Virus record (IMG/VR): IMGVR_UViG_3300026521_000471
Location: 160,468-224,467 of that record
Length of the DNA stretch: 64,000 bases
Strand: one strand, 5' to 3'
Under the pieces are notes generated by a model that saw only the letters and a list, made by a program, of their open reading frames with translations, was not told the origin of the DNA and searched no databases. The position numbers and the translations under genes are program-made. Shown piece by piece: positions 6,378 through 31,276 of the stretch; position 1 is the stretch's first letter; each line of letters starts with the position of its first letter.

Positions 6378-7262
6378 ATGCTATTAACATTTGGAGGATA
6401 TGGTGGTGAATATTGCTGTGGTGAACTCAGTAAGCTTCATATTAACAATATAAAAGAACTACTTAGACGTTTTGAATACGAAGATATTATTGGACATTTC
6501 GATACAATTTTTAGTAGTAGTGGATGGGAAAGACAATATTATGATTTTGATGATATTGAACATATTTCTAGCTGTGCCATTGATGGTAGTATTTCTATTA
6601 ATCCTAATGAACGCGAACATACAAAGTATGATTCTATTAATATTAGTGATTTAACTATCAATATCAATGATGATGACTTTTTATCTGATGGTTGGTATAT
6701 TTCATCAGCTTCCATAGAAAAAGGTATTTTTTTTGAAGCAGAAATTTTAGATGATGTCAATGAATTTAATAAAGATTTACTGATCATAGATGCAAAAGAT
6801 ACAGATTATATTGGTACTGGAGACATTTTAGTTACTGATGTTTTTTACAATAATAAAGTCCTCGAAATGAACTATGATGTTATGGATACATTCGGTAAAG
6901 GTTTCTATCAAAGTATTTTTCATGTTAAAGATAGGATACATTATGACGGAAAGGAAAAACTCCTAGACGATTTTAAAAACTCTTTTAATATTATTGAAAT
7001 GGTTGGTATGGATCGTGAAGATATAATCTTTGAATATTTAGAATATGTAGAAGCTGCAAATAATAAGCATTTAATAAAAGATGATCGAATTATAGTTTGG
7101 GCTAGTCCATTCTTATATGAACATTTTGAAAAAGAAGATGTAGACCTTTTATGGATGACTGAAAAGAATATTAAATTCGCATTGAAAAATGGTTTAAAAG
7201 ATGAAATACCACCAAATATTTTTGAACGTATTATTATGAGGTTTCCAGAATGGCTAATTTAG
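6378..7262 (+). CDS. hypothetical acidic protein (C-terminal FPEWLI)
   Basis: 294-aa ORF in operon. Confidence 0.6.
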   Translation: MLLTFGGYGGEYCCGELSKLHINNIKELLRRFEYEDIIGHFDTIFSSSGWERQYYDFDDIEHISSCAIDGSISINPNEREHTKYDSINISDLTININDDDFLSDGWYISSASIEKGIFFEAEILDDVNEFNKDLLIIDAKDTDYIGTGDILVTDVFYNNKVLEMNYDVMDTFGKGFYQSIFHVKDRIHYDGKEKLLDDFKNSFNIIEMVGMDREDIIFEYLEYVEAANNKHLIKDDRIIVWASPFLYEHFEKEDVDLLWMTEKNIKFALKNGLKDEIPPNIFERIIMRFPEWLI

Positions 7263-7540
7263 TATATGGTATTACCATTGATAGAAAATTATTTCATGGC
7301 AAAATTATAAAATCCAGTTTGAAATCTATGATTTCTATTAAGACAGTTGATAATAGAATTTTAAATTTTCCTAAGTCTCATAAATTATTTAAAACAAAAG
7401 AAGAACGAGATATAGAAATTTTTTTAAATAATAATAATTTAAGCATAGATAAAGTTGCAGAGTTATATAATATTAACAAAAAAGAGGCAATTTTAGCTTA
7501 CCAATCAGCTATTAAAAAATTTCCCGAAAAATTTATATAA
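7250..7540 (+). CDS. hypothetical protein (C-terminal FPEKFI)
   Basis: Overlaps upstream gene. Confidence 0.55.
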   Translation: MANLVYGITIDRKLFHGKIIKSSLKSMISIKTVDNRILNFPKSHKLFKTKEERDIEIFLNNNNLSIDKVAELYNINKKEAILAYQSAIKKFPEKFI

Positions 7541-7549
7541 AGGATCATT

Positions 7550-8143
7550 GTGAATATTAAAAGCAATATAAAATCTAACATTAAAGGTAAATCCTTAATA
7601 AGAACAAAATCTTACATTATACCGACTACTGTAACATTTCTTATAGGTTGTTTTATATGGTTATTAGATGGTAGCTGGGGAGTATATTTAACATTTTTAA
7701 TTATAGGTATCATTACCCACTTTATTTATGTAGGTATAAATGAACATTCAAGATATAATCATGATCTGCATTGGGATAATGAAGCCTATTATAATTGGTT
7801 TGCCATTGTTGGTTTACCAATGATATTAATTGGTATTTTTTACCCATTTGCTATATCCCCAGCAATCCACGACTATTATCATGCAGAACGAATTGATGAA
7901 GAAATACCTATCGACAAAAATATTTCTCTTATGTACAATGACTACCATAGTACATTTATATTAATGGTTGAAGGAGAAAAACAACCTCTTCTAATTGATA
8001 AAGGTGGTTCTAGCGATACTTACAATCGTATGAAAGCTAGCTATCTTGATAAAAAAATAAAAGTAGTTAAAAAAAGATATAAATCTTGGACTGATGACGA
8101 AATTCAAACAGTTTATCAGTTAGATGGTTACACATTCAAATAA
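7550..8143 (+). CDS. membrane protein (about 3 TM)
   Basis: AAGGA RBS before GTG; hydrophobic segments. Confidence 0.6.
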   Translation: MNIKSNIKSNIKGKSLIRTKSYIIPTTVTFLIGCFIWLLDGSWGVYLTFLIIGIITHFIYVGINEHSRYNHDLHWDNEAYYNWFAIVGLPMILIGIFYPFAISPAIHDYYHAERIDEEIPIDKNISLMYNDYHSTFILMVEGEKQPLLIDKGGSSDTYNRMKASYLDKKIKVVKKRYKSWTDDEIQTVYQLDGYTFK

Positions 8144-8152
8144 AGGATTTTT

Positions 8153-10843
8153 ATGAATAAAATTAAAACACAAGTACATACTATAATAATGCTTATTGGA
8201 CCTAGTGGTTCTGGTAAAACAACATTCGCTAATGAAATTCTAATACCCACATTACAAGAATATAAAGGTAGTGGAAATGACAATTTAAAAACAAATATAC
8301 AATATATTAGTTCTGATGATATTAGAAAAGATATTTTAGGATATAATTATAGTAAAATAGATGAAATTATGACTGAAAGTTCAACACAAGCATTTGAAAT
8401 ATTATTTACAAAATTAAGAGCTGTTACTAGTTATCCAATCAATGCTGAATTTGTTATTTTAGATACAACTGGATTAAGTGAAAAATTTAGAAATGATGTT
8501 TTAGATATAGCAAAAGATAATAATTATAATGTCGATATTATAGTTTTCGATTATAAGAATATTGATGAATATCAGAAAAATTTTTCTGATGAAGTTTATC
8601 AACAACCTAGTACTAATGGCAAAATTATTTCTAAGCATATAAAAAGATTAAAAACAGAAACATTAAAAACATTAAAAAAAGGTGTATATAAAAATATTCA
8701 TAAAATTAAAAATAAAGATTTTCTTTTAGAAGTTGAACAGGAGAATCCATATGATTTAACACCTACTATGTTAAAACCTCTTTATAGTGTAGATGTATGG
8801 GATTGGAAAAAATATACTGATAGAATATTAAATAGTACTTATGATTGGATTACTATTGGTGATGTTCATGGATGTATTCATGAATTAAAACAATTACTTG
8901 AAAAATATGGTTTTATAATTGAAGACAATGAAATCATAGATACAAACAAAACAAAAAATATAGGATTGATTTTTGCAGGTGATTTAATTGATAAGTCGTC
9001 AGAAGAAGATTTAACTGAAACTATAAGATTTATACATAAAAATATGATAAAATTTCAAGATCGTTTTCAATTAATATTAGGTAATCATGAAGAGATGGTC
9101 TGGAAATGGATAACAAATCATAAAGATTTAGAAATTACTCCAGAACGATTGGATCAGAAAAAAAGATACTATAATACAGCAATTTTACTAGAGAAAAATG
9201 AAGAGTTAAAATCTATGTTTTTAGATATTTTTCATAATATGAAAGGTTGGGTTAAATTTATAGGATTAAACAAAAGAAGTTTTGTAGTTACACATGCACC
9301 ATGTGAGGTTAAATATCTCGAAAAAATGGATCGTATTTCATTAAAACGTCAATATAAATGCGCTAGTAGAAGTAAAAACAAAGATAAGACTAATGATGAA
9401 CTAACACCATATTTAAAAGAAGAAGCAGTTAATAACCATCCAGTTCACATATTTGGTCATATGGGACAATCATCTGTTAGATCTTTTAAAAATAAAGTTT
9501 GTATTGATACAGGCTGTGTATATGGTGGAAGATTAACTGGATACAGTATAGGATACGGTAAACCATTTATTCAAAGTGTAAAATCATTATCTCCTAAGAG
9601 TGCAAGAAACGACTTTGGAAATAATCTATTTGAAGATATAGGTAAAGCTATAAAAGAAGTATCTATTGAAGATTTAAATCCATACAACCAAAAAAGATTA
9701 GATTATATAGTAAAAAATGGCATAGGATACATAGGAGGTACAATTTCACCTTCAAATAAAAACATCGAAAAAAATTCACTAGAATCTTTAGATAGTGGAC
9801 TTAATTATTTCAAAGATAAAGTAGATAGTGTAGTTCTACAACCTAAATATATGGGGTCTAGAGCACAACTGTATCTCTTTAAAGATAATATTGAAAAATG
9901 CTATGCTACAAGTAGAAATGGATATAAAATTAGAGAGGACTTAACTGATTTATTCTCATCTAAATTAATAGAATACAAGCATATTTTTGATATGTATAAT
10001 GCTGATGAGATAATTATAGATGGTGAATTATTACCATGGGCTCTTTTAGGAAAAGGTTTGATAGAAACACATTTTAAAACTGCGGATATAGCTATCCAAA
10101 CAGAAATCGACTTTCTGGATGATAATGGGTTTGATAAGGCTTTTTTAAGTTTAAAGGATGAATTTAATGAATCAGAATTTTTAAAAGATAAAAATATTTT
10201 AGCTAAAAAAGAATTAGCTAAAAAATATGGTCACAAATATCACTCTTATAAAGATTTAAAATTTGAAATTGATAGATTCATACCTTTAAGTAAACACAAA
10301 AAAGCTTGGAAAATTTTCAATAAACAAATAACCCTTTATGGAGATGATACAAATACAGATTTTAAAGGTTTTAGATTATTAAAAGTAATATCAAATAACA
10401 ATATAATCGATTTGGATCTAACCCCTAGCGAACACTTTAAACTATTAAATTCAGATGATATTCATATTGTTGATTTCAATGATAAAGACTATTTAGTTAA
10501 AGCTGAAAGATGGTATGATGATTTAGTGAGTAATCAAAATATGGAAGGTTGTGTAATAAAACCGGAAGTAAAGTTATTAGAATCTTGGATTGCTCCATAT
10601 TTAAAAGTAAGAAATGAAGAATATCTTTCTATCATTTATGGGTATGATTATAAATTCCCTGTCAAATTTAATAGATTATTAAATCAAAAAAATATTTCTA
10701 AAAAATTAAGACTCTCTATATCAGAGTATAAATTAGGAGAAGAAATGCTTAAAGCTCCTATGGGTAGTAAAGAACAAATACAGATTATAGCCAATCTATT
10801 ATTTGAAAATGAAAAAGAAGAAAGCGTCGATCCAAGATTATAA
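8153..10843 (+). CDS. pnkp: bacterial-type Pnkp (kinase-phosphatase-ligase), partner of Hen1
   Basis: P-loop GPSGSGKT; metallophosphoesterase GDVHG, GDLID, GNHE; ligase KYMGSRA, DGELLPW, EGCVIKP; terminus VDPRL. Confidence 0.93.
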   Translation: MNKIKTQVHTIIMLIGPSGSGKTTFANEILIPTLQEYKGSGNDNLKTNIQYISSDDIRKDILGYNYSKIDEIMTESSTQAFEILFTKLRAVTSYPINAEFVILDTTGLSEKFRNDVLDIAKDNNYNVDIIVFDYKNIDEYQKNFSDEVYQQPSTNGKIISKHIKRLKTETLKTLKKGVYKNIHKIKNKDFLLEVEQENPYDLTPTMLKPLYSVDVWDWKKYTDRILNSTYDWITIGDVHGCIHELKQLLEKYGFIIEDNEIIDTNKTKNIGLIFAGDLIDKSSEEDLTETIRFIHKNMIKFQDRFQLILGNHEEMVWKWITNHKDLEITPERLDQKKRYYNTAILLEKNEELKSMFLDIFHNMKGWVKFIGLNKRSFVVTHAPCEVKYLEKMDRISLKRQYKCASRSKNKDKTNDELTPYLKEEAVNNHPVHIFGHMGQSSVRSFKNKVCIDTGCVYGGRLTGYSIGYGKPFIQSVKSLSPKSARNDFGNNLFEDIGKAIKEVSIEDLNPYNQKRLDYIVKNGIGYIGGTISPSNKNIEKNSLESLDSGLNYFKDKVDSVVLQPKYMGSRAQLYLFKDNIEKCYATSRNGYKIREDLTDLFSSKLIEYKHIFDMYNADEIIIDGELLPWALLGKGLIETHFKTADIAIQTEIDFLDDNGFDKAFLSLKDEFNESEFLKDKNILAKKELAKKYGHKYHSYKDLKFEIDRFIPLSKHKKAWKIFNKQITLYGDDTNTDFKGFRLLKVISNNNIIDLDLTPSEHFKLLNSDDIHIVDFNDKDYLVKAERWYDDLVSNQNMEGCVIKPEVKLLESWIAPYLKVRNEEYLSIIYGYDYKFPVKFNRLLNQKNISKKLRLSISEYKLGEEMLKAPMGSKEQIQIIANLLFENEKEESVDPRL

Positions 10844-11118
10844 TAGTATTTTTGTATAATTCTAATAAATAATTAGTCATATCGACAAAAGGAGATAATT
10901 ATGTTACATTCAATTAGTAGATCTTATTTAAATTTTATTCTTACTCGGATAGCATTTACGTAAATACATTTATTGAATCTTCTATAAAAAATATCTTTGA
11001 TTTAGGTGGTGATTTATGAGTTTAATAATCATCTCCTATATAATAAAATGGTATAAAAAGAAAAAATAGAAGTCAAATCACTATGGTAACATGATTTGTA
11101 TATTTATCGGATGAAATT

Positions 11119-11457
11119 TCATCTAATTTGATTATCATCCGATATTAAAGGGTTTACTCGATAACCTTTGTAAATTTTATTTTTTAACGAATCATTCACA
11201 CAAGCATCATACTTTTTTAAAAACTGATTTGATATTTCTAAATATCTATTTTGTAATTCATATGATTTTACATTATTAACTTTATTTAAAAAATTTATTA
11301 CTTCTTTTTTATATATTAAACATGAATCTTTAATATTTCTTTGATCAATTATAATTATTTTATTTTTGATATATGAAATCCCTTCAGATGCATTATACCA
11401 TTGATCATCAGCGTTTAAAAATATTATACTAATTAATATTATTAATATCTTTTGCAT
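11119..11457 (-). CDS. secreted/periplasmic protein
   Basis: Signal-peptide-like MQKILIILISIIFLNA; overlaps upstream TM gene. Confidence 0.55.
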   Translation of the reverse strand: MQKILIILISIIFLNADDQWYNASEGISYIKNKIIIIDQRNIKDSCLIYKKEVINFLNKVNNVKSYELQNRYLEISNQFLKKYDACVNDSLKNKIYKGYRVNPLISDDNQIR

Positions 11458-11822
11458 TGTTCAGTATCCTCCATTAATCTTTCTATCGGTTCCCATTTAG
11501 CATTTGTACTGATTTTTTTATATTTTTTCTTGAGAGATTGTAATATACTATAATTTTCTAAATACTCATCCCATTCCGTATCACTTACTGCACATGGATT
11601 ATGTTCAGAACGACGCACTATATCTTTCAATATCATCATTTGAGTAATCTCTATTCGTTCAGTATTTTCCGATATACTATCTAATATACCCTCATAACTA
11701 ATATACCCACCAATACCGACTGTAATAACAAAAGATAAAAATCCGTATAAGGCAACGACTGTATTCGTCATTTTATTAAATTTATCAAAAAATGAATTAT
11801 TATTTTCTTTATTTTTAGACAT
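11442..11822 (-). CDS. single-TM protein, late promoter
   Basis: N-terminal TM helix; TATAAATA at 11844-11851 (-). Confidence 0.6.
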   Translation of the reverse strand: MSKNKENNNSFFDKFNKMTNTVVALYGFLSFVITVGIGGYISYEGILDSISENTERIEITQMMILKDIVRRSEHNPCAVSDTEWDEYLENYSILQSLKKKYKKISTNAKWEPIERLMEDTEQCKRY

Positions 11823-11962
11823 TTTATTACCTCTATTTTTCTTTATTTATATTTAAGTATTTTTTTTGTATAATATAATATAAATAAAAACACACTTTGT
11901 GTATTATTAAAACTGTTATTGGATCTAACACAAGTTAGAATGAATAACTAAGGAGAACTAAT

Positions 11963-13494: not shown

Positions 13495-13498
13495 AATT

Positions 13499-14452
13499 AT
13501 GGAAAAAATAGAAACACTAACCGATATGGTAGAAGTAATCAGAGAAATAAAAACACCGACAAGTCAAAAAGCTAATATGGTTGTAGGAAATATTAGAGCA
13601 CAAATTAAAAATTACGTACAACGTAATAATCTTAAATCACTTGTAGTAGGTGTGAGTGGGGGTCTTGATTCAGCTGTTGTAGCGGCTCTTTGTCAAGAAG
13701 AATTTACAGGAGTACCTCTAATTGGTCTTTCTATTCCTATGAGTTCAACTAACGCTCACAAAGAACAGGCAGAATGGGTAGGTAATACCTTTTGTACGGC
13801 TTTTGAAGAATTCAACTATTGGGATGAAACTTTTCAGTACAATGAAGAAGAAGGTACTGATATGATGAGTGAAGTATTTAATACCGTTTCAGCAACAGAT
13901 AAAGTTGCTGAAAAAGCAGGATTTAAAACGGAAGATTTTCCAAAAAATGTTCTTCAAGGTAATATTAAAGCGAGGCTTAGAATGATAACTCTTTATGACC
14001 TTGCAAGAAAAACAAACGGTATGGTTCTTTCAACAGATAACCTTTCTGAATTTCAAATGGGATTTTGGACTATTTGTGGTGATGTAGGTGATTTTGGACC
14101 TATCCAAAATGTTGGTAAGGGGTTTGAGCTTCCAGCCATAGCAAGAGCTCTTGGAATAAGAGCAGATATTATCACTCAATCGCCTAGTGATGGACTAATG
14201 GTAACTGAAGAAAATACAGATGAGGCTCAACTTGGAGCTAATTATGAGGAAGTTGATACTATTATGAGTATTTATCTTGGCAATATCAATAAACCAAAAG
14301 AAATTATAGATAAACTTAAAAGTAACCTATTTAATATTATTAATGATAAAAAGAGTGCTAAGAAAATTTCAAATGTAATTACACGTTATGAAAATTCACA
14401 CTTTAAACGTAATGGTACAATCAACCTTACAAGAGAACAGATCGGAATCTAA
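13499..14452 (+). CDS. nadE: NH3-dependent NAD+ synthetase
   Basis: GVSGGLDSAV, GNIKARLRM, STDNLSE, GFWTICGD, PSDGL, DEAQLG. Confidence 0.93.
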   Translation: MEKIETLTDMVEVIREIKTPTSQKANMVVGNIRAQIKNYVQRNNLKSLVVGVSGGLDSAVVAALCQEEFTGVPLIGLSIPMSSTNAHKEQAEWVGNTFCTAFEEFNYWDETFQYNEEEGTDMMSEVFNTVSATDKVAEKAGFKTEDFPKNVLQGNIKARLRMITLYDLARKTNGMVLSTDNLSEFQMGFWTICGDVGDFGPIQNVGKGFELPAIARALGIRADIITQSPSDGLMVTEENTDEAQLGANYEEVDTIMSIYLGNINKPKEIIDKLKSNLFNIINDKKSAKKISNVITRYENSHFKRNGTINLTREQIGI

Positions 14453-14477
14453 ATTCCGATCAAAAAAAAGGATATTT

Positions 14478-14822
14478 ATGGTTTACCGTTCTAAAGCTGA
14501 TTTAGAGGAAATTAGAAAGTCACAAAATAATATTAAATTATATGCTGTATATTCACATCTTGCATTACCCGTATTTAAAATCAAATCATTAAGTAAAAAA
14601 TATGTATATTGGGAAGATAATTCAAAACATCCATATCCTAGTAATTCAGCAGGTTATATATTAACAGACAATTTATATGAAGGTTGGAAAATATATAAAG
14701 ATACTTATAATAAACGGAAAAAATTTATTGAAGACCAATATAAATCAGAAATACAAAAATTAACAATGGCAGAATCTATACTAGATTCTCTTTCAAAATC
14801 AAATCCAGAACTTTTTATCTGA
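14478..14822 (+). CDS. hypothetical protein (C-terminal NPELFI)
   Basis: AAGGA RBS before ATG 14478 (track start 14388). Confidence 0.6.
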   Translation: MVYRSKADLEEIRKSQNNIKLYAVYSHLALPVFKIKSLSKKYVYWEDNSKHPYPSNSAGYILTDNLYEGWKIYKDTYNKRKKFIEDQYKSEIQKLTMAESILDSLSKSNPELFI

Positions 14823-14851
14823 TTTTAAGTATAATTCCATTATAATCCACT

Positions 14852-15172: not shown

Positions 15173-15185
15173 AAAAGGACATAGC

Positions 15186-15389: not shown

Positions 15390-15398
15390 AGGATAACT

Positions 15399-19417: not shown

Positions 19418-20821
19418 ATGGCTTTATTAACTTACGATGAAGTATTAGAAATCACAAAAATAAATGAAACTTTTAAAATGAAACACCAAAAAATAGGTAA
19501 CACAGAAATTGCAATGTGTACTTATTTTTTAGCAAATGCAGGTGATTTTTTTGATGCAAAATTAGATGGCTCTATGGTTAGAGCCACAGAATTAAGAGGT
19601 ATAACATTTGTAAAAGCTCCAAATTCAGACTGGAAAACATATTTGTTTATCGATAAATTTTTTAATATCGGTCAAACAAATGGAACTAATATAACAAATA
19701 TGGAACTTTCTATCAATGACTCAACTGAAATTTGTAATATTAATAAACTTTTTATCGATGAAAATGAGAAAACATATCGTGCAATAGATTTAAAGTTAAA
19801 TATGATTGTTGCTGAATTTGATAGAAATACTGAAACTCATGGGGATTTTTTTCAAATTTTATCACTAGATAAAAAAGTTTTACCTACATTGAAACCTGAA
19901 AATTCTTGGATGTATGAGGATGTAAAAGATTTAGAAATTGTAAGAATTGCAAATAAAGAAGATGGATCCGCAATAAGATTTCTTTTAATTGAAGGAAAAT
20001 TAGTGGCTAAAACAAAATTTTCTTTTGAATCAGAACAATGCAAATTAGCTATGGAAATAGTTGAAAAAGATCCTAAACTTAAAGCATTTATTTTAACAAC
20101 TTTAGAGTTTGGATATGCAGCAATTTTTGAAATAGTTTCACCATTTAATAAAATCGTTTTAACATATCCAGAAACATCTCTTAGATTGTTGCAACTAAGA
20201 GATGAAAATAATGATGGGTTATATCTAAATATATATGATAATACATTAGTAAAAGCATTTAATATCTTGACTGCCAATCAAGAACCTTTATACACACTTG
20301 ATGAGTTACTTAAATTAAAAGAAACCGTTGAAGATAAAGAAGGTTGGGTAATTACATTTGAAAATGGAAAAATGGCAAAGGTAAAAACTGATTGGTATAT
20401 GTCACTTCATGGTATTTTAACTGATGGGTTAAAAGAACATAAAATAATTGAAAAGGTTTTAGACGAAACGATTGATGATACTATAGCAATGATACCAGAA
20501 GAAAATATTGAAGAACGAGATTTTATTGATGGTATCTCTGAAATTATAATTAATCATGTAAATCATTTAGTGTCAGATGCAGAAGCTAAATTTAAAAATT
20601 CATGGAATGGAAATAAAAAAGAGTTAGCACTAAAATTTAAGGATGATAAACGTGCTTTTCCATATATAATGAGTTTTGCAAATGGAAAAAATATTGAAGA
20701 AATTGAAAAACAAGTTATAGATAGAGTTAAATTTGAATGTAGACGTTTAGAAATGGCTAAACAATACCTTAAAAATTTAGGTTTTGACAAAGAACTCGAA
20801 ATAAAAATTGAGGATGATTAA
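19418..20821 (+). CDS. T4 Rnl1-type RNA ligase
   Basis: ELRGITF, KFFN, motif I KEDGS, FEIVSPFNKIV, EGWV, KVKTDWY. Confidence 0.9.
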   Translation: MALLTYDEVLEITKINETFKMKHQKIGNTEIAMCTYFLANAGDFFDAKLDGSMVRATELRGITFVKAPNSDWKTYLFIDKFFNIGQTNGTNITNMELSINDSTEICNINKLFIDENEKTYRAIDLKLNMIVAEFDRNTETHGDFFQILSLDKKVLPTLKPENSWMYEDVKDLEIVRIANKEDGSAIRFLLIEGKLVAKTKFSFESEQCKLAMEIVEKDPKLKAFILTTLEFGYAAIFEIVSPFNKIVLTYPETSLRLLQLRDENNDGLYLNIYDNTLVKAFNILTANQEPLYTLDELLKLKETVEDKEGWVITFENGKMAKVKTDWYMSLHGILTDGLKEHKIIEKVLDETIDDTIAMIPEENIEERDFIDGISEIIINHVNHLVSDAEAKFKNSWNGNKKELALKFKDDKRAFPYIMSFANGKNIEEIEKQVIDRVKFECRRLEMAKQYLKNLGFDKELEIKIEDD

Positions 20822-20823
20822 TC

Positions 20824-21351: not shown

Positions 21352-21358
21352 ATAAAAA

Positions 21359-21669: not shown

Positions 21670-23169
21670 ATGGCAAAATTTAACCAAGGTACTAAAAGTA
21701 TCCCAAATAGTAAAAATATGGCTGGAGGGGTATCATATGATCGCCCAATAAAAAAAGAGGTTGCGACTGTTGTTTTAAACTCTATGCTTAATGGTGATTC
21801 ATATTATGAAAAAGAAGGTGAACGTTTAAAACGAATTGAAACTCTTATCACTACATCAAAGTCTGATGCTGAGTTTGTAGCAAAAGCTATGGTGTTTACT
21901 AGAACAAATGGTCGTCTTAGAAGTATTTCACATTTCATGGCAAATATTTTAGCAGAAAATGTAAAAGGTAGTGACTTTTTACGTTCAGCATTAACAAAAG
22001 CTATTGTAAGACCGGATGATATGACAGAAATGTTATCACTTTGGGATACAAGAAATCCAAATAAAATGGTTCCGAATTCACTTAGAAGAGCCTTTAAGAA
22101 AGCTTTGGAAACTAAATTTGATGAATATCAATTTCGTAAATATGCTCAACCAAAATCAAAAGTGAAACTAAAAGATGTCGTTAAACTAGCACATCCTTCA
22201 CCTAAGAATTTTGATGATGAAACTATTTTTAAAAGAGTTATCGAAGATCAATTAAAGGCTGTTGAAACAGCACAAACTATCAATGCATCTAAAACTGGTG
22301 AAGATCGAGTTGAAGCATATATGAAAGAAATTAAATCTGGTAAAATGGGTTATATGGCAGCATTAAAAAATATTAGAACATTGATGGAAAATAATATTTC
22401 AGAAGATGACTTAAAACAATGGTCTAATTTTATAACTGATCCTAAAAGGGTACAAAAATCAATGGTACTTCCATTTAGATTTGTTGATGCATGGAATGCT
22501 GTAAAAGATTTACCTATTAATGAATTTAAGAAAAATATTGTTAAGAAAGCACTTGAGAGAGCTTTTGCCCTATCAGCTGGAAATACAAATATTGCTTCTG
22601 ATGATGAAAAAGTGGCTATTTTACTTGATGAATCAGGTTCTATGGGCGGATATTCAAATAATGACCGTAAAACACCATTTTATATTGGTAAAGTATTATC
22701 AGCTGCGATGAAAGTAGGTATGGATGATGATAAGTGTCTGTTTTATACTTGGGCAGATACATGTACAAGAAGAGATATAAAAGGTTTGTCATCTTTTGAT
22801 TTTATCAATAATTTAAATACTAGAGGTGGAGGTACTGATGTATCAGCTCCTTTAAAAGAGTTAATTAAAACAAAAACATTTGTTGATAAAATTATAATCT
22901 TTAGTGATATGCAGATGTATGGTGGATGGGGAAATATTGGAGATCAACTCAAAAATTATTTAAAAACATATCGTAAAGAAGTCAATCCAAATGTAAAAGT
23001 ATTATTTTGGAATTTAGAAGGATATGGTGGTGGTTCACCATTAGATATTGAAAAAACATCTGATATTTTTGAAGTAGCTGGTTTTTCAGATAGCATGCTT
23101 CAAATTATACCTAAATTATGGAGTGATAAAGATTTTTTAATTAAAGAGATTGAAGCTATATCACTTTAA
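21670..23169 (+). CDS. TROVE + vWA protein (Ro60/Rsr family)
   Basis: NMAGG.SY, RPDDMTE, EYQFRKY, LKDVVKLAHP, MAALKNIR, LPFRF; vWA LDESGSM, GGGTD, IFSDMQ. Confidence 0.92.
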   Translation: MAKFNQGTKSIPNSKNMAGGVSYDRPIKKEVATVVLNSMLNGDSYYEKEGERLKRIETLITTSKSDAEFVAKAMVFTRTNGRLRSISHFMANILAENVKGSDFLRSALTKAIVRPDDMTEMLSLWDTRNPNKMVPNSLRRAFKKALETKFDEYQFRKYAQPKSKVKLKDVVKLAHPSPKNFDDETIFKRVIEDQLKAVETAQTINASKTGEDRVEAYMKEIKSGKMGYMAALKNIRTLMENNISEDDLKQWSNFITDPKRVQKSMVLPFRFVDAWNAVKDLPINEFKKNIVKKALERAFALSAGNTNIASDDEKVAILLDESGSMGGYSNNDRKTPFYIGKVLSAAMKVGMDDDKCLFYTWADTCTRRDIKGLSSFDFINNLNTRGGGTDVSAPLKELIKTKTFVDKIIIFSDMQMYGGWGNIGDQLKNYLKTYRKEVNPNVKVLFWNLEGYGGGSPLDIEKTSDIFEVAGFSDSMLQIIPKLWSDKDFLIKEIEAISL

Positions 23170-23193
23170 TATTAGATAGGGAAACCTATCTAA
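23170..23193. terminator. bidirectional terminator hairpin
   Basis: ttagatagg-gaaa-cctatctaa between convergent genes. Confidence 0.7.
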
Positions 23194-24020: not shown

Positions 24021-24065
24021 AATATCTCCAATTAAGTTTTTATTATGTTTATTTATACCTTATTT

Positions 24066-24341
24066 CTAATCATTACGGATGATACCAAATATTTCATCCA
24101 TTTCAATAATTAATAATTTTTCTTTATCTAATTCAATTTCAGTACCAGAAAATTTTCCAAAAACAACTGTCGTACCAATATCTACACCGAAATCTTCTTT
24201 AGTATCATCGTTACATGCTACAATTTTTCCAAAAGATGGAGTTTCTTTTGATGAATCAGGTATAATAATACCACTTGCTGTTGTTTTCTGAGCTTCCTCT
24301 ACTTTTACCGCTACTCTAGTTCCTAATGGTTCAAAATTCAT
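24066..24341 (-). CDS. groES: co-chaperonin GroES
   Basis: PLGTRVAV, KTTASGIIIPDS, FGKFSGTE. Confidence 0.92.
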   Translation of the reverse strand: MNFEPLGTRVAVKVEEAQKTTASGIIIPDSSKETPSFGKIVACNDDTKEDFGVDIGTTVVFGKFSGTEIELDKEKLLIIEMDEIFGIIRND

Positions 24342-24365
24342 TTTAATTCCTTATTTTTTATTTTA

Positions 24366-24656
24366 TTATACAAATTTTTCAGGGTATTTTTCTAACATTT
24401 TAGTAAACATTTTATGAAGATCATTAATATTTACTTTAAACTGCTCTTCTATAACCTTATTAATACTTAATATAGTTTTTAACATGGCTTCATCTTCTGA
24501 TTTTTCTAATAAATGTTTAGATTTTCTTTTTGTATTTCCTCGACCAACATCAATAATACAAAACTTATTTGTAATCCTTAAAATTTTTCCAGTAGAAATT
24601 TTTCCAGACCACTCATCTTGATACCAAACTTGCATACCTATTTCAAAATCTTTCAT
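24366..24656 (-). CDS. hypothetical protein (C-terminal YPEKFV)
   Basis: AAGG RBS; SH3-like N-terminus. Confidence 0.6.
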   Translation of the reverse strand: MKDFEIGMQVWYQDEWSGKISTGKILRITNKFCIIDVGRGNTKRKSKHLLEKSEDEAMLKTILSINKVIEEQFKVNINDLHKMFTKMLEKYPEKFV

Positions 24657-24693
24657 TTAAAACCTTATTAAAAAACTTATATTATATATATTA

Positions 24694-25767: not shown

Positions 25768-25801
25768 ATTTCCTCCTTTTGTATTAAGTATTTTACAAAT
25801 T

Positions 25802-26068
25802 ATGATATTTTATATAATAAATATACTTAAAATTAAGGAAAATTTAATGTATTTTGCAATAATTAATGAGAAAAATGAATATCTAAAAGTAGAATTTGTC
25901 GATAATATATTTTGTTTAAATAATAAAGGGGTGGTCTTTACTAGTAGTTCATTAGAAGTAATAAAAAAAGTATTGGATGGGGGTGAGGGTACATTAGAAA
26001 TACCCTCAAATAGTTTTAAAAATCTTAAAGCTGTACAATTAGCAATTAATATAACAGCCGAGTATTAG
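25802..26068 (+). CDS. hypothetical protein
   Basis: Likely start at ATG ~25847 after AAGGA. Confidence 0.45.
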   Translation: MIFYIINILKIKENLMYFAIINEKNEYLKVEFVDNIFCLNNKGVVFTSSSLEVIKKVLDGGEGTLEIPSNSFKNLKAVQLAINITAEY

Positions 26069-27105
26069 AATTCATCCCAACCATCAACAGCAGAAGATTG
26101 ATTATATGATGTTACAGTAGATTCAAAGAAATTACCTTTAACATCACCATCACCTTCTGTATCGGCAATTTTTTCTAAATGCCCATAAGGATTTTTTTGA
26201 TATTTTTCATCTAAATAAAGTTTTGGGGCACCAATAGCTTCTAATCGTTTATTTGCCATCCATTTTGTGTATCTATCTGTACTTTCTTCACTTATTCCCA
26301 AAATATCATTTCCAATAATATGGTTAGTCCATTGAATTTCTTGATTTGTTGCAATTTCAGTCATTTCTAAAATTATACCAACATTATACATATCTGGAAA
26401 TTCTTGCTTTATAGCATATATAATATTTTCAAATAATACACAATGCGTTAATTCATCACGATTAATATAACGAATTACATCCGATGATCCGGGCATTAAG
26501 TTTCTACTAGCTAAATTATAAAAAAAGTTAAAACCATTATAAAAATAAAGCCCTTCTAATAAGTAATTAGCAATAAGAACTCTAAAATAATTTTCATCAG
26601 AAGGATCATCGATAAATTTTTGATAAATTTCAGCGATATATTTATTTCTTGTTAATAACACATCATCGCTTCTCCAAAAATCATAAATTTTTTCTCTCTT
26701 ATTTTTAGGTATTACTGTTTCTATTGTATATGCATATGATTGTGAATGGATTGCTTCTTGATATGTTTGTATGCTCAATACCAATCCAACTTCGGGAGCA
26801 GTTATCATATCACTAATATTTGGTAAATTATTTACTTGAATACTATCCAAAAAAACTAAGAATGATAAAATACCATCATATGCTTTTTGTTCAGCTTTAG
26901 TAAGCTTCTTATAATCATTTGAATCAATACTCAAATCAACTTTTTCTGGAATCCAAAAATTAGCCATCATACTTCTATAAAGTTTATTCGCCCAAGTATA
27001 TTTAACATCATTTAAATTAAATAAATTAGTTGGATCCCCTTTAATAATTGTTCTACTTTGAATACTATCATCACCTAATGGATTAAATAATTTTTTCTTT
27101 TCCAT
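26065..27105 (-). CDS. nrdB: ribonucleotide reductase class I beta subunit
   Basis: NFWIPEKV, FLDSIQ, QEAIHSQSY, LEGLYFYNGF, INRDELTH, NFFES. Confidence 0.95.
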   Translation of the reverse strand: MEKKKLFNPLGDDSIQSRTIIKGDPTNLFNLNDVKYTWANKLYRSMMANFWIPEKVDLSIDSNDYKKLTKAEQKAYDGILSFLVFLDSIQVNNLPNISDMITAPEVGLVLSIQTYQEAIHSQSYAYTIETVIPKNKREKIYDFWRSDDVLLTRNKYIAEIYQKFIDDPSDENYFRVLIANYLLEGLYFYNGFNFFYNLASRNLMPGSSDVIRYINRDELTHCVLFENIIYAIKQEFPDMYNVGIILEMTEIATNQEIQWTNHIIGNDILGISEESTDRYTKWMANKRLEAIGAPKLYLDEKYQKNPYGHLEKIADTEGDGDVKGNFFESTVTSYNQSSAVDGWDEF

Positions 27106-27198
27106 TTATTATCCTTCTGTTATTATTTTAATATTATTTTACATTTTTTCAATAATCTATTCAAAACTACTATAAATACTTTTAAAATAGGAGATAAT

Positions 27199-27702
27199 AT
27201 GAAAATAATAGATGAAATAGTTAAAAAACTTAATCCAGGTGGTATTAGTTATTATGCTGATAGGAATAATACTTATGACCAAAAGACTATTACTGATACA
27301 ACAGCTGAATTTGATAAATTTATTAAAAATGAAAAAAATTGGGGAGAATTAATTAGTGCTATATATAGTACACACTCTGATTTTAAATCGGGTAAATATG
27401 CTGTAGCACCGTCAAAGCAGAAAGGTGTATTTACTGTGATTAATACAAAAAATCCAAAAGAACCAGCTTTTGATGTTAAAGTTGAGGTTGTTAAAAATAC
27501 ATTAGTTATTAATAATCTTAAATCCAAATCTAAAGATACAAAAATAGAATTAGGTACTATGGTTGAATCTACTCAACCAACAACAACACCTCAAGAATTT
27601 GTAGATAATATTATAGAAAATCTTAATAAAAATAAAAATTCTTTTAAATCTCCAAAAGCAGTTGTTGATTATTTAAAAAAAATAATTTCAGATTACAAAT
27701 AA
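27199..27702 (+). CDS. hypothetical protein, late promoter
   Basis: TATAAATA 27171-27178; AGGAG RBS. Confidence 0.65.
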   Translation: MKIIDEIVKKLNPGGISYYADRNNTYDQKTITDTTAEFDKFIKNEKNWGELISAIYSTHSDFKSGKYAVAPSKQKGVFTVINTKNPKEPAFDVKVEVVKNTLVINNLKSKSKDTKIELGTMVESTQPTTTPQEFVDNIIENLNKNKNSFKSPKAVVDYLKKIISDYK

Positions 27703-27749
27703 ATTTAAGGTATTTTCTGATATAACTTTAAAAAATAAAGAGAGAAGTA

Positions 27750-27926
27750 ATGTCTAGTAATAATAAAAATAATACAGTAAATGAAAAAGAAGTATTAAGA
27801 CAAAATATTCTAATGGATATTTATCTCTATGAAAAAGAGTTATTAGATAATAATTTAAGAAATGAAGATAAACAATACATTAAAGAAAAAATTGAAGAAG
27901 CTGAAAATCTTTTTAAAAGTATTTAA
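27750..27926 (+). CDS. small hypothetical protein (not in track)
   Basis: 58-aa ORF after TGATATAA promoter-like site. Confidence 0.4.
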   Translation: MSSNNKNNTVNEKEVLRQNILMDIYLYEKELLDNNLRNEDKQYIKEKIEEAENLFKSI

Positions 27927-28405
27927 GATACAAAATATAAAGATGTTAATTCATCAACAGCTATAATTATTGATGTATCAATTATATCTGAATCTATTTT
28001 TATTCTTATATTTAATTTAACATAATAAAGATTATTATCCCATACTGTCTCACTTTTAGAATAATCCAATTTTAATAAATTATTTTGAGAGTGAGAAAAA
28101 ATATCTAAAATATCAGTTATGAATACCTTAGTTGGATCATCAAACTCAATTCTTTCTTTTAAAAAATATATAAGTTTTTTGTCGATTAAAAAAGAAATCT
28201 TCCCACCAATTAAATTAGAAACTCTAGCATTAATTTGCTTACCATCTTTTAGAATAATTGGTGATAATCTTATCTTACTTAATTTAATATCAATATTAAC
28301 ATTTGCTAATTTCCAAGCAGACTGCCTAATAGAAAATATCATATCTCTAATTAAGTCTTTAAATACCTGTGTCTTACAAGGAGTTTGTAAATCTGCAACT
28401 TTCAT
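27923..28405 (-). CDS. hypothetical protein
   Basis: TATAAATA at 28425-28432 (-). Confidence 0.55.
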   Translation of the reverse strand: MKVADLQTPCKTQVFKDLIRDMIFSIRQSAWKLANVNIDIKLSKIRLSPIILKDGKQINARVSNLIGGKISFLIDKKLIYFLKERIEFDDPTKVFITDILDIFSHSQNNLLKLDYSKSETVWDNNLYYVKLNIRIKIDSDIIDTSIIIAVDELTSLYFVS

Positions 28406-28527
28406 ACCTAACTCATTTTATTTTTATTTATATTAAAATTATAGAGTCTTGTTATTAAATATATGAAAGCTGAGGGAGGGGGAGTACACCTTATTAATTA
28501 TTGTGCCGATAGGCACAAACGCAAGCA

Positions 28528-28685
28528 ATTTTTTAAAAAATTATAATTTTTTTAAAGTTCTTATAAATTTAAAATTATTTTATACAAATTGCCCAATTAG
28601 TTACTTACGTTTGTACTCTTTTATTTATATAATTTTTTAGACCATTTTAAAACTTTCTGATAAAAATTATAATTTTTTAAAAAAT
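28528..28685. repeat. 24-bp perfect inverted repeat in non-coding DNA
   Basis: attttttaaaaaattataattttt (28528-28551) / aaaaattataattttttaaaaaat (28662-28685). Confidence 0.7.
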
Positions 28686-28783
28686 AAAAAAGCGTAAGTA
28701 AAAAGTAGAGGATTATAAGTATTATAACTCTTTGAAACTATTACCCCACCACCTTGCATAATGCATAATAAACTACTGTAAAT

Positions 28784-29062
28784 TTAAAGGGTTTTATTAG
28801 ATTCTTGAAGTTTTAAATTTCTTTCTATTTCTAATACAGATGTATGTTCTAATAACATTTGATAAACTTTTGTATAATCTTCAAGTTCTTTTTTACTATA
28901 TAAAGTTTTAGAATTTGGAGATGTAACCAATGTTTTTAATGCTTTATAAATTTTTAAGAGAGATTCATTACTCATAACTATGTTCTCATCAAGAAGCTTT
29001 CGTACCTCTATAACTCGACCACTCAAACAATGTGAAATAAATTGTATATCATTTTTATACAT
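28784..29062 (-). CDS. hypothetical protein, late promoter
   Basis: TATAAATA 29093-29100 (-); GAGGG RBS. Confidence 0.55.
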   Translation of the reverse strand: MYKNDIQFISHCLSGRVIEVRKLLDENIVMSNESLLKIYKALKTLVTSPNSKTLYSKKELEDYTKVYQMLLEHTSVLEIERNLKLQESNKTL

Positions 29063-29464
29063 TTTAACCCTCTCTTATAATCACCATAATAATATTTATA
29101 AAGCTAAAATAATTGTTTGGTTTGTAACGTTTGAATCATCTTTTTTAAAATTGGTTGAACTAATTTAAAAACCAGTTTAATTTTTTCTTTGCATTTTTTA
29201 TATGGTTATGATTGTGTGTTCACTTTTAAATGTGCTGATGCGTTGACGGCAAAAAATTAGAAAGTATATCTTATGAATTTAGATGGATTTAAAAATATTT
29301 ATCTTTTCAAGTATGTTAGAATTATTTAGAAGAGAGTTACTGAAATATTAAATCAGTTAAAGAAATATAGGAATAGTTAAAGAAATATAGGAAGGTAGGG
29401 TTCTCCCACACTACCTTAAACTCGGCTTAACTTTTCATCCAAAAAATAGCCTTTTTCAGGGAAA

Positions 29465-29600
29465 CGGTCGGTCAAAAAACACGCTATCCGAAAAAACACA
29501 CCCCCTAAAAAAACACGCTTTGTTAAAAAACATGACTCTTTTTTTTAACGATCGGTCAAAAAACACGACCGATTTTGAGAAGGGTTATCAAAAAACACCC
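29465..29600 (+). repeat. iteron-like AAAAAACA(C/T) repeats, 17-bp phasing
   Basis: Copies at 29474, 29491, 29508, 29525, 29558, 29590; tcggtcaaaaaacacg occurs twice. Confidence 0.7.
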
Positions 29601-29609
29601 TCTCTTTTT

Positions 29610-29840
29610 TTACCAATATAACTCAGTAACTCTCTTTGCTATTTTGAATTGTTCCTCATATGGTAAGTTTGAAAACTCTGCCGCCAATTCTTCATCACCA
29701 CCGTGGATACTAACATAATCTAATGAAGCATCTGCTAACATTTCCGTTGTTAAATTCTCACCATTGATAGCTGCCACCTCTTCCATATCACATGCAATTG
29801 TTTGAATTGTATTTGATAATAAACTTTGGTACTTACTCAT
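29610..29840 (-). CDS. small acidic early protein
   Basis: Promoter cassette upstream. Confidence 0.65.
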   Translation of the reverse strand: MSKYQSLLSNTIQTIACDMEEVAAINGENLTTEMLADASLDYVSIHGGDEELAAEFSNLPYEEQFKIAKRVTELYW

Positions 29841-29886
29841 TATATCTCCCTTTGATTAATTATAGTATATTATACCATAATTTTAA

Positions 29887-30465
29887 TTAGTTGTCAAGAG
29901 TTTCTAAGTATTTAGACATCTCTTTGAATTTATCTTCATAATCCATATATGTATATTCCACGAATAAAACAATTTCGGCAAAACTATCTAAAATTTCTTG
30001 TACATCTTTCATATCGAGACCTAAAAGTGCATATGGTGAATGTTTGTGAGCGATAATGTTTCTAAGCTTGTTAAACATTTGTAATAAATGTTTATCATTA
30101 TTTGGAATATCTAAGAGATTCAATAATTGAGACATTGTTAAATCTGATCTTTTTACTATTTTGAAATCATTAGCATCACATGCATATCTCATTAGTAAAA
30201 TAGTAGTAAGTTTAGTATGAGTATTTAATACTAAATCATTAGCTATTAATATATCATAAGTTGCTTTATCAATTTTTCTAAGTATTGATTTTGGGGTATT
30301 TGGAGTTTGTGGCATCATTATATATTTAAAATTTTTTATTCCAGAACGAACACACGTACTAAAATCTCCTGTAAAAATAGCTATATCTAAAGGCATTGAT
30401 ACACTATAAGATTTTATTCTTTCAATTAGTAAAAGTTGTTCCATACTATTCAATCTTTTTAACAT
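29887..30465 (-). CDS. hypothetical protein with RNxxxH (HEPN-like) motif
   Basis: LRNIIAH matches HEPN Rx4H; nothing else recognised. Confidence 0.5.
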   Translation of the reverse strand: MLKRLNSMEQLLLIERIKSYSVSMPLDIAIFTGDFSTCVRSGIKNFKYIMMPQTPNTPKSILRKIDKATYDILIANDLVLNTHTKLTTILLMRYACDANDFKIVKRSDLTMSQLLNLLDIPNNDKHLLQMFNKLRNIIAHKHSPYALLGLDMKDVQEILDSFAEIVLFVEYTYMDYEDKFKEMSKYLETLDN

Positions 30466-30511
30466 TGTTTACCCCTTTGATTAATTATACCTATATTATA
30501 ACATATTATAG

Positions 30512-31276
30512 TTAATATGTCAATAGTTCCGGTTCTCTTTTTGCAATTTTCAATAATACTAATAGTGTATAATAACTATCATTACCCCCATTATGTAAAT
30601 GAATTGGTTTTACCCCTATAATACTCTCTACTAAAGTTTTTAAATTGTGGGTCTTATTTTCTAATAGATATAATGGTGCAAATCGTTGAGTATCCAATAC
30701 TGCTATATTATCAATATCAATATCACAACTGTATAAAAATGGTTTATCATTACCAAAAGCATGTCCTACTAAAAAGTCTGTACCTTTGAAAAGTACTCCA
30801 ACTATTACTTGTATTGCTTCTAATGGTAATATTTGAGATTCTCCATAATCGAAGTGGAATTTATTATCTGGTACAAATCGACCATTTTTAAATTGTTTAG
30901 TTTCTAATACTATAAAATGATATGCTTGGATTTTTTCATCTTCAAAAATAGTAATACCTACTTCTGTAAGTTGTCTTGTTGTTTCGTGGAATTCTAAATC
31001 CATAGAAAATAATTTTTTACCTTGGATTTTTTCATTTAATTCTGATAACACTTCTGGGGCAGAACTAACTTTTTGTTCCCATTTGAGTTGATTTTTGATT
31101 CTTCTTTTTAACCGTTTGATAGGTTTATTATATTTTGCAAATTTTCTTAGTAATAATTTATCTTCTGGAGTATAAAGAGTATAATCAATAGTATGTAAAT
31201 ATTCGATTTTATTTTGTTCTTCTGGAGTGATATTTGATTGAAGTTCTTCTTCTAAAATTGTTAATTGAGTTTTCAT
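30512..31276 (-). CDS. DEDDh 3'-5' exonuclease-like protein
   Basis: SMDLEF, LVGHAFGND, LDTQ, LHNGGNDSYYT. Confidence 0.8.
   Translation of the reverse strand: MKTQLTILEEELQSNITPEEQNKIEYLHTIDYTLYTPEDKLLLRKFAKYNKPIKRLKRRIKNQLKWEQKVSSAPEVLSELNEKIQGKKLFSMDLEFHETTRQLTEVGITIFEDEKIQAYHFIVLETKQFKNGRFVPDNKFHFDYGESQILPLEAIQVIVGVLFKGTDFLVGHAFGNDKPFLYSCDIDIDNIAVLDTQRFAPLYLLENKTHNLKTLVESIIGVKPIHLHNGGNDSYYTLLVLLKIAKREPELLTY

Follow-up and report, generated by a model that had tools for sequence, protein, structure and literature searches.

Phages and cells can use a short terminal peptide to bring unrelated proteins to one partner or place. In bacteriophage T4, the C-termini of the DNA polymerase gp43, a family-B enzyme, and of gp33 and gp55 carry a short hydrophobic and acidic epitope that is interchangeable between these otherwise unrelated proteins and is recognized by one hub, the sliding clamp gp45 (PMC2988020). 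In gp55 this epitope is a tail on a flexible linker (PMC2988020). The internal proteins of T4 (IPI-III, Alt) are encoded in hypervariable loci by tandem, fast-evolving and mutually unrelated small genes that are united only by a capsid targeting sequence, which is N-terminal and is cleaved after Glu by the prohead protease. In the same way, encapsulin cargo-loading peptides and the eukaryotic PTS1 (SKL) and KDEL signals are short C-terminal peptides, usually on disordered linkers, that are read on unrelated cargo by one receptor or shell. Finally, dozens of copies of a tiny module can occur within one jumbo-phage lineage, as for the approximately 35 zinc ribbons of Bacillus phage G (PMC7824862).

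Here, a short C-terminal motif is described in an uncultivated jumbo phage from a hydrothermal vent, in which about one gene in ten ends in [F/Y]-P-E-x-hydrophobic-I/L/V followed by the stop codon. As in T4, a protein resembling a family-B polymerase is among the carriers, but the sequence differs from that of the T4 epitope, there are 39 carriers rather than 3, and the tag continues a predicted ordered helix instead of following a flexible linker. As in the T4 internal-protein loci, arrays of 2-5 small, fast-diverging genes without body similarity share only the tag, which is however C-terminal, and no capsid or protease gene was identified. The consensus also differs from those of the encapsulin, PTS1 and KDEL peptides. 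Compared with the zinc ribbons of phage G, the repeated unit is only about 15 residues long, is always at the very C-terminus and is attached to dissimilar bodies, so that it is not a domain of its own. Literature searches and a survey of jumbo phages (PMC7824862) gave no description of this tag.

The motif in the window and in the whole genome

The window analysed is a stretch of 64 kb that forms the end of a 224,467-bp IMG/VR virus record (GC 28%, 85% complete). An earlier note had claimed, from the sequence alone, that four dissimilar proteins of the window share a C-terminal tag that follows a helical stretch, with a weaker fifth case. The relevant features are the following.

5122..6375 (+), Hen1-like RNA methyltransferase, upstream neighbour of the first two tag genes
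6378..7262 (+), 294-aa tag protein ending IMRFPEWLI, lying between Hen1 and Pnkp
7215..7259 (+), 15-residue C-terminal module of the 294-aa protein, with the tag FPEWLI at 7242-7259 and the stop codon at 7260-7262
7250..7540 (+), 96-aa tag protein ending IKKFPEKFI, whose start overlaps the end of the 294-aa gene
7493..7537 (+), 15-residue module of this 96-aa protein, with the tag FPEKFI at 7520-7537 and the stop codon at 7538-7540
8153..10843 (+), Pnkp-like polynucleotide kinase-phosphatase, 896 aa
14478..14822 (+), 114-aa tag protein ending SKSNPELFI, just downstream of the NAD synthetase gene
14775..14819 (+), 15-residue module of the 114-aa protein, with the tag NPELFI at 14802-14819 and the stop codon at 14820-14822
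24066..24341 (-), phage Cpn10 (GroES-like)
24366..24656 (-), 96-aa tag protein ending LEKYPEKFV, immediately upstream of the Cpn10 gene
24369..24413 (-), 15-residue module of that protein, with the tag YPEKFV at 24369-24386 and the stop codon at 24366-24368
30512..31276 (-), DEDDh 3'-5' exonuclease ending KREPELLTY, not part of the feature

The observation made in the note holds for its four main cases, and the phenomenon is much larger than it had reported. All four open reading frames exist and end as described. For the third one the longest reading frame starts at 14388, but the orthologue alignment supports the start at 14478 that the note had given. The fifth case was rejected as chance. 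It is a DEDDh exonuclease (PF21762, E 6.7e-25; PF01612, E 1.5e-6) in which PE lies at -7/-6 instead of -5/-4, and PE at C-terminal offsets other than -5 occurs only 0-4 times per offset in 380 genes, which is chance level.

The enrichment of the motif at gene ends, which the note had named as a check, was examined in the whole record. Among 380 called genes, 36 end in P(-5)E(-4)xx[ILV]-COOH, whereas 0.85 are expected from composition (Poisson p = 4e-45). Shuffling of the last 10 residues gave a mean of 1.3 and a maximum of 7 in 2000 trials, and only 2 of 403 rejected (non-gene) reading frames have P at -5 and E at -4. The stricter [FY]PE..[ILV] was found 28 times at the terminus and 6 times internally, the latter being close to an estimated chance value of about 4. 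At the DNA level, the pattern TWYCCNGARNNNNNNNTNTRR gave 30 hits against 1 for the reversed control. Three more members that had been missed by gene calling were found by hand (KKYPEFFI, EEYPECMI and KEYPDLII), giving a total of 39, of which four lie in the window. Exactly three residues follow PE in all 39, P is invariant (39/39), E is nearly so (38/39), the last residue is I, L or V in 39 of 39, and the residue at -3 is hydrophobic in 72%. In PDZ numbering these last two places are positions 0 and -2, at which a class II PDZ ligand would have hydrophobic residues on a free C-terminus, a resemblance that rests on the sequence pattern alone.

In control sets, no tags were found in 135 genes of six unrelated IMG/VR loci, which had been reached through six chance matches in a scan of IMG/VR for FPEWLI followed by a stop codon, nor in the 25 genes of a further record, L017. 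No relatives of the phage were found in INPHARED or IMG/VR. Related contigs were retrieved from metagenomes with the Pnkp-like protein as query, at 54-94% identity. This protein has PHROG kinase and phosphatase hits, while its Hen1-like neighbour has PHROG methyltransferase hits and orthologues in the records L027 and L028 that carry PF22032 Hen1_N.

Dissimilar bodies and predicted structure

The dissimilarity of the bodies that the note had claimed was also confirmed. With the last 7 residues removed, no BLASTP hit was obtained between any two members at E<0.01, and with the last 25 removed there was no excess of Smith-Waterman similarity. Among the 39 members, no Pfam-A or PHROG family is matched by more than one. 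By hhalign, only the last 29 columns of the family of the 96-aa protein at 7250..7540 could be aligned to the 294-aa family (E 1.7e-4), and only the last 11 to the 114-aa family. The carriers include a family-B DNA-polymerase palm fragment (PF00136, 30 bits against a cut-off of 23), a DnaJ-type zinc finger, SH3/Tudor-like barrels and a predicted new fold. Most of them are small (79-127 aa).

The claim that the tag follows a helix is supported by two AlphaFold2 models, whose folds differ. The 294-aa protein (pLDDT 91.9) is predicted to consist of a beta-rich N-terminal domain (about residues 1-190) and a helical C-terminal extension (191-294), with a helix at 279-288, a kink at F289/P290 and a last turn at 290-293. 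The 96-aa protein at 7250..7540 (pLDDT 81.8) is predicted to form an SH3/Tudor-like barrel with strands at 4-41, followed by helices at 50-59, 66-72, 77-90 and 92-95. Foldseek against the PDB gave no significant match for either model, with only weak Tudor/PWWP/KapB/YorP matches for the 96-aa protein, and the ESM Atlas gave no usable hit. In the two models the tag itself is a confident helix-kink-one-turn element (pLDDT 78 and 91) and not a floppy tail. Per-position signal runs from -15 to -1, with hydrophobic residues at -14/-13 and -10/-9, polar residues at -15, -12 and -8, and an aromatic residue at -6. Nevertheless, a search of the PDB with a 22-residue profile of the module retrieved only ordinary internal helix-Pro-Glu-helix junctions (best E 0.18), so that the local structure is generic.

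Conservation in metagenomic relatives

The signal is carried by the protein and not by the DNA, since CCA, CCT, CCG and CCC are all used for Pro and both GAA and GAG for Glu, and since the relative L014 keeps the tag although its GC content is 39% against 27%. FPEWLI is the most conserved 6-mer of the 294-aa family (rank 1 of 289) and FPEKFI that of the 96-aa family of 7250..7540 (rank 1 of 91), while in the PolB-like family the tag ranks 26th of 278, behind the catalytic motifs. Orthologues of the 96-aa protein at 24-57% identity keep [FY]PE[KM]F[IV], and those of the 114-aa protein at 79% and 33% identity end NPELFI and FPEYFI. For the 96-aa protein at 24366..24656, a 75%-identical homologue (P0002) ends KYPEKFV and is also followed by Cpn10, which the Cpn10 of the window matches at 80 of 90 aligned residues.

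All 16 other full-length members of the 294-aa family in hand end in PEWL[ILV] or PEWFI, except one ending ADWLI. On the contrary, about 50 remote homologues match only the N-terminal ~185 positions and have neither the C-terminal extension nor the tag. Three distant PolB-like orthologues carry one or two extra residues (W, WA) after the tag, so a free carboxylate exactly at this place is not always required. Moreover, tagged proteins diverge faster than their neighbours, being 56-82% identical to the near relative against a neighbour median of 89%, and 26-32% identical to the distant relative against a median of 54%.

Candidate partners

No partner was found. In the 224-kb record, no match was obtained at E<=1 with the gp45 model PF02916, the beta-clamp C-terminal domain (PF02768), PCNA_N (PF00705) and DNA_pol3_delta2 (PF13177), nor at E<=0.1 with the other gp45 model PF09116, although the record is only 85% complete and a host clamp is not excluded. 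Models of the terminase large subunit, the tail sheath and the T4-type capsid protein gp23 likewise returned nothing. A phage GroEL, the Cpn10 and an M16 peptidase are present, but nothing links them to the tag. A complex prediction for the adjacent 294-aa and 96-aa tag proteins gave an ipSAE of 0.00, which is not evidence either way.

Possible role of the tag

Taken as a whole, the analysis establishes that the motif is real, acts at the protein level, is specific to the terminus, is under purifying selection across a phage clade and occurs on different body types, and that in at least one family it sits on a clade-specific C-terminal extension of a wider domain family. What it does is inferred only, and this includes binding to any partner. 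The note had proposed a docking or sorting signal recognized by a common hub such as a phage scaffold, protease or chaperone; this interpretation is partly supported, as conservation on unrelated proteins is what a shared recognition signal predicts, but neither the existence of a hub nor its identity is shown. In the preferred view, to which a probability of about 0.45 may be given, the tag is the end of a lineage-specific module of about 15 residues, made of an amphipathic helix, an aromatic residue, a Pro-Glu that kinks the chain and starts one final helical turn, two mostly hydrophobic residues and a terminal Ile, Leu or Val. It would work as a compact hydrophobic-acidic knob docking all these proteins, encoded for the most part in translationally coupled tandem arrays, onto one common partner, by the logic through which gp43, gp33 and gp55 all bind gp45. 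The partner may be a host protein or may be encoded in the roughly 15% of the genome missing from this record. The absence of any match to the five clamp and clamp-loader models in the record and the ordered helix preceding the tag do not fit the T4 case, and 39 clients is many more than any known phage hub has.

A less likely but serious rival is that the tag is an intramolecular cap without any hub, which simply closes a C-terminal helix onto the core of each protein, its abundance reflecting a lineage-specific expansion of small genes by tandem duplication and occasional fusion, with bodies diverged beyond recognition. The ordered state of the tag in both models, the hydrophobic stripe at -14/-13, -10/-9 and -6 expected of a helix packed on its own domain, the tandem arrays that are the usual footprint of duplication, the 29 columns shared by two families, which hint at a slightly larger helical element, the frequency of helix-PE-helix junctions in solved structures and the precedent of phage G all speak in its favor. 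However, a nearly invariant PE on bodies as different as a beta-barrel, an all-helical protein, a zinc finger and a polymerase palm is more than a generic cap needs. The tag is also more conserved than the core of its own proteins, it belongs in the 294-aa family to an extension and not to the ancestral domain, and the trimmed bodies show no residual similarity.

Other readings seem unlikely. A degron or processing signal read by a ClpXP/Lon-type protease, the phage M16 peptidase or a prohead protease could time the removal or maturation of a cohort of small proteins. Non-polar C-termini are classic bacterial degradation signals, as in the ssrA tag and in the Sauer-lab work on C-terminal determinants, [FY]-P-E resembles, in sequence alone, the hydrophobic-x-Glu sites cut by T4-type prohead proteases, and the genome encodes, besides the M16 peptidase, a DUF2201 metallopeptidase whose gene ends where a five-gene tag array begins. 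Yet the tag has no sequence match to known degrons and does not end in an LAA-like tripeptide, its ordered structure in the models argues against an exposed unfolded tail, and marking a polymerase-like protein and members of an RNA-repair operon for destruction is not obviously useful. The same proteins would be odd cargo for a signal that routes the cohort into the capsid for co-injection or out of the cell. The hypervariable internal-protein loci of T4 are mirrored by the arrays found here, but the T4 signal is N-terminal and cleaved. In parallel, the acidic residue followed by three mostly hydrophobic residues after an amphipathic helix loosely resembles, in sequence pattern alone, the extreme C-terminus of protease-type type I secretion substrates, which are served by a cognate ABC exporter. 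An origin at the nucleic-acid level, as a by-product of a Shine-Dalgarno sequence for the overlapping downstream gene or as a recombination linker between gene cassettes, is largely refuted by the codon usage given below.

A more speculative and rather doubtful possibility is that the tag is a true C-terminal address code, analogous to PTS1 or KDEL, sending about 40 rapidly evolving proteins, roughly 10% of the proteome, to a single receptor or destination in the infected cell or virion. It would then be the first proteome-scale C-terminal sorting or docking signal described in a bacteriophage, and a handle to tag cargo or to recover the hub. Most genes of jumbo phages are small reading frames of unknown function with no handle for study, whereas here about 40 are tied together by one selectable element of 6-15 residues, through which a common partner, place or fate could be assigned to a tenth of the proteome of an uncultivated vent phage clade. 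If a hub exists, the tag is a portable docking peptide for engineering and a new example of how phages organize large sets of fast-evolving effectors. If none exists, it is a clear case of a minimal structural cap surviving when everything else in a gene family has diverged, which is useful for detecting remote paralogues.

Codon usage in translationally coupled genes

In tag genes whose stop codon overlaps the next start, Glu is GAG in 11 of 15 and Pro is CCG in 7 of 15, which gives GGAG about 8 nt before the ATG, whereas the counts in uncoupled tag genes are 1 of 21 and 0 of 21 (p = 2e-5 and 8e-4). However, 21 of 36 tag genes are not coupled and still carry the motif, using GAA and CCA/CCT, coupled genes without the tag have E at -4 in only 8 of 65, synonymous codons vary freely and the tag survives the 12-point GC shift in L014. 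The codon bias is therefore a secondary adaptation and not the cause of the motif, and it provides a natural example of a codon pair that doubles as a Shine-Dalgarno site.

Content of the viral record

The record is a linear IMG/VR virus contig of 224,467 bp, of which the window covers bases 160,468-224,467, with a CheckV completeness of 85% and a GC content of 27.9%. It encodes rIIA and rIIB, GroEL and a Cpn10, an aspartyl-tRNA synthetase and EF-Tu, a Pnkp-Hen1 RNA-repair operon, RNA ligases and a Thg1-like enzyme, NAD synthetase and ribonucleotide reductase, a DnaB-like helicase and topoisomerase II, two sigma factors, PAS-GGDEF, GGDEF-EAL and NIT-MCP signalling proteins, as well as an M16 peptidase, a DUF2201 metallopeptidase and a TnpB. 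Nevertheless, none of the three structural-gene families that were searched for, namely the terminase large subunit, the tail sheath and the T4-type capsid, was found in the record, and they may lie in the missing 15% or be too divergent to detect. Roughly 40 kb are missing here, and this part would be expected to hold the capsid, portal, protease and any clamp. Sequencing runs that contain the stretch are labelled hydrothermal-vent and epibiont metagenomes, and Campylobacterota are candidate hosts.

Frequency and position of the C-terminal motif

The four main ORFs described in the earlier note were found to end exactly as it stated, and its observation of a shared C-terminal tag on dissimilar proteins holds. 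On the contrary, the fifth and weaker case that it listed is out of register and is a DEDDh exonuclease, and it is treated here as chance. Across the whole genome, 380 genes were called with a greedy longest-ORF procedure giving 92% coverage. Among them, 36 have Pro at -5 and Glu at -4, followed by two residues and I/L/V, whereas 0.85 are predicted from composition and shuffled termini reach at most 7 (Poisson p = 4e-45). PE at every other offset within the last 15 residues occurs 0-4 times and only 2 of 403 rejected ORFs have the motif. In the same way, [FY]PE..[ILV] occurs 28 times at the terminus and 6 times anywhere else.

In parallel, an independent count of the corresponding DNA pattern gave 30 hits against 1 for the reversed pattern and revealed two members that had been missed by gene calling. 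A profile search of all stop-to-stop frames had already turned up a PD variant. These three were confirmed, which brings the set to 39. In addition, a 180-aa protein encoded at genome 151272-151817 ends in SFVNPQLFV, which is tag-like with Gln in place of Glu and may be a decayed or variant member.

Members are mostly small, as 32 of 162 genes of 60-130 aa carry the tag against 4 of 177 longer genes. They are concentrated in the first 66 kb of the genome, with 27 of 126 genes against 9 of 254 elsewhere, and they often sit in tandem arrays of two to five.

Protein-level signal and codon choice

All four Pro codons and both Glu codons are used in the tag and the stop codon varies. Moreover, the distant relative L014, a related metagenome contig with a GC content of 39%, keeps the tags. 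A secondary nucleotide effect was nevertheless observed. In tag genes whose stop overlaps the start of the next gene (ATGA), Glu is GAG in 11 of 15 cases and Pro is CCG in 7 of 15, and CCG GAG forms a GGAG Shine-Dalgarno sequence about 8 nt upstream of the ATG. In uncoupled tag genes, which use CCA/CCT GAA, the corresponding counts are 1 of 21 and 0 of 21 (p = 2e-5 and 8e-4). These codons doing double duty were noted at genome 4322-114018, outside the window, and may be compared with the stops at 7260-7262 and 7538-7540 within it. Coupled genes without the tag have Glu at -4 in only 8 of 65 cases. The ribosome-binding site therefore shapes codon choice but does not create the motif.

Extent of the shared element and diversity of the carrier proteins

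When each position from the C-terminus was compared with untagged genes, the 39 sequences were found to carry signal from -15 to -1 and none beyond. Positions -15, -12 and -8 are polar while positions -14/-13 and -10/-9 are hydrophobic. Position -6 is Y or F in 31 of 39 sequences, P is present in 39 of 39 and E in 38 of 39, positions -3 and -2 are mostly hydrophobic, and position -1 is I, L or V in all. In-register similarity over -25 to -7 is far above that of controls (p = 3e-41).

The bodies of these proteins are otherwise dissimilar. With the last 7 residues removed, no pair gave a BLASTP hit at E<0.01, and with the last 25 removed, local-alignment scores among tagged proteins did not differ from tagged-versus-untagged or shuffled scores. 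No Pfam or PHROG family is matched by more than one of the 39, and the single hits include DNA_pol_B and the DnaJ CXXCXGXG zinc finger. Profile-profile comparison of orthologue alignments aligned only the last 11 columns between the 96-aa and 114-aa families, or the last 29 between the 96-aa and 294-aa families (E 1.7e-4), and found nothing between the PolB-like and 294-aa families.

For the 96-aa protein (window 7250-7540), AlphaFold2 predicts an SH3/Tudor-like barrel plus three helices (pLDDT 81.8), while for the 294-aa protein it predicts a beta-rich domain plus a helical domain with no PDB neighbour (pLDDT 91.9). In both models the tag has the same local form, that is a long helix, a kink at the aromatic-Pro and then a single helical turn, at pLDDT 78 and 91.

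Conservation of the tag among relatives

No kin was found in INPHARED or IMG/VR. However, JGI, GenBank and Logan metagenome contigs were found to include relatives, among them a 94%-identical contig of 221.5 kb (Ga0256837_1000002), a contig of 261 kb at 57% identity (JACCDW010215491.1), both figures being for the Pnkp protein, and fragments. Orthologues keep the tag. The 294-aa family ends in PEWL[ILV] or PEWFI in all but one (ADWLI) of the 16 other full-length members in hand. The 96-aa family keeps it at 24-57% identity and the 114-aa family at 33% identity, with NPELFI changed to FPEYFI. The 75%-identical homologue of the Cpn10-adjacent protein also keeps it, as do the two tag genes upstream of the PolB-like gene in a contig whose PolB-like protein is only 36% identical. 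The tag is the most conserved 6-mer in two families, whereas the tagged proteins evolve faster than their neighbours.

About 50 remote homologues of the 294-aa protein match only its N-terminal 185 positions and end differently. In that family the tag therefore belongs to a clade-specific C-terminal extension. Yet two facts count against a strict requirement for a free terminus, as three distant PolB-like orthologues carry W or WA after the tag and one lacks it.

Possible mechanism

The invariance of Pro-Glu on unrelated bodies, the fixed distance to the end and the fact that the tag is more conserved than the cores of its proteins suggest that the tag itself is the selected function and is read by something common. 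While the motif, its terminal position, its protein-level nature and its conservation are established by the sequence comparisons, the existence of a common partner and any binding to it are only inferred. The view of the earlier note that the tag is a docking or sorting signal recognized by a common hub is thus supported only in part.

The closest precedent is found in T4, in which highly similar hydrophobic-acidic C-termini of the DNA polymerase, gp33 and gp55 all bind the gp45 clamp and can be swapped (PMC2988020), and it is suggestive that a PolB-like protein carries the tag here. On the contrary, none of the five clamp and clamp-loader models tried matched the record, the tag is modelled as ordered rather than tethered, and 39 clients would be unprecedented. 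A docking knob for a common but unidentified partner is therefore proposed only tentatively, with a probability of about 0.45. A purely structural cap spread by a lineage-specific expansion appears less likely but remains possible, whereas a degron or processing signal, sorting into the virion or out of the cell, and nucleic-acid explanations are all unlikely. The one complex prediction, run between the two adjacent tag proteins, gave no verdict and favours neither view.

No description of this motif was found in Pfam, PHROGs, the PDB or the papers searched. Shared terminal tags on unrelated phage proteins are already known, and what differs here is the sequence, its scale of about 10% of genes and its predicted ordered helix-kink form.

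Genomic neighbourhood and other features of the genome

Within the window, two of the tag genes are part of a phage-borne Pnkp-Hen1 RNA-repair operon. The window holds this operon and other genes as follows.

5122-10843: Pnkp-Hen1 RNA-repair operon, also seen in the related contigs L027, L028, L014 and L011
15399-16538: Thg1-like guanylyltransferase
19418-20821: RNA ligase
21670-23169: RNA-binding protein
24066-24341 (-): Cpn10, a GroES-like co-chaperonin

The 294-aa and 96-aa tag genes sit between Hen1 and Pnkp, followed by a 197-aa gene, in several relatives that keep this region (contigs L011, L016 and L027), while other contigs carry only one of the two (L014, L015, L028) or neither (L012, L013, L017). 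The 114-aa gene follows NAD synthetase, and the 96-aa gene on the minus strand precedes Cpn10. Contigs identical to this phage were found in a biofilm metatranscriptome library over window 5211-5369, 6186-6538, 7614-7880 and 10717-11000, which shows presence only and is not proof of transcription. Downstream of the tag genes at genome 4989, 29219, 132634 and 50713 and at window 14822, several tag genes are followed within 30 nt by TGTAAAAT... or ...TATAAT-like words that look like sigma-70-type promoters for the next unit.

The only family-B polymerase signal in the record is a 283-aa protein (genome 64573-65424; L005:4573-5421 in the numbering of locus L005) with motifs B and C only, and no exonuclease domain was found anywhere. 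It may be half of a split or highly divergent polymerase. The 509-aa gene upstream (genome 61025-62554) has no family match, and the synteny of a 506-aa gene, two tag genes, an AAA_33 kinase and the PolB-like gene is kept in the related contig L019.

The genome also contains an unusual set of cellular-type genes for a phage, a TnpB-like gene and a second lineage-specific expansion.

Genome 42531-43682, 94364-96214, 26842-28137, 75026-77212 and 151851-154028: EF-Tu, aspartyl-tRNA synthetase, a PAS-GGDEF cyclase, a NIT-MCP-CZB chemoreceptor and a dCache-GGDEF-EAL protein
Genome 45833-47023: TnpB/IS605 OrfB-like gene (Cas12f1-like TNB domain)
Genome 97868-103519, 112040-113350 and 126668-129322: six paralogues of about 440-530 aa, all matching phrog_10773 (unknown function)
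Genome 121726-123351: GroEL

Finally, the phage encodes both this GroEL and the GroES-like Cpn10 of the window, and the two genes lie far apart in the genome.
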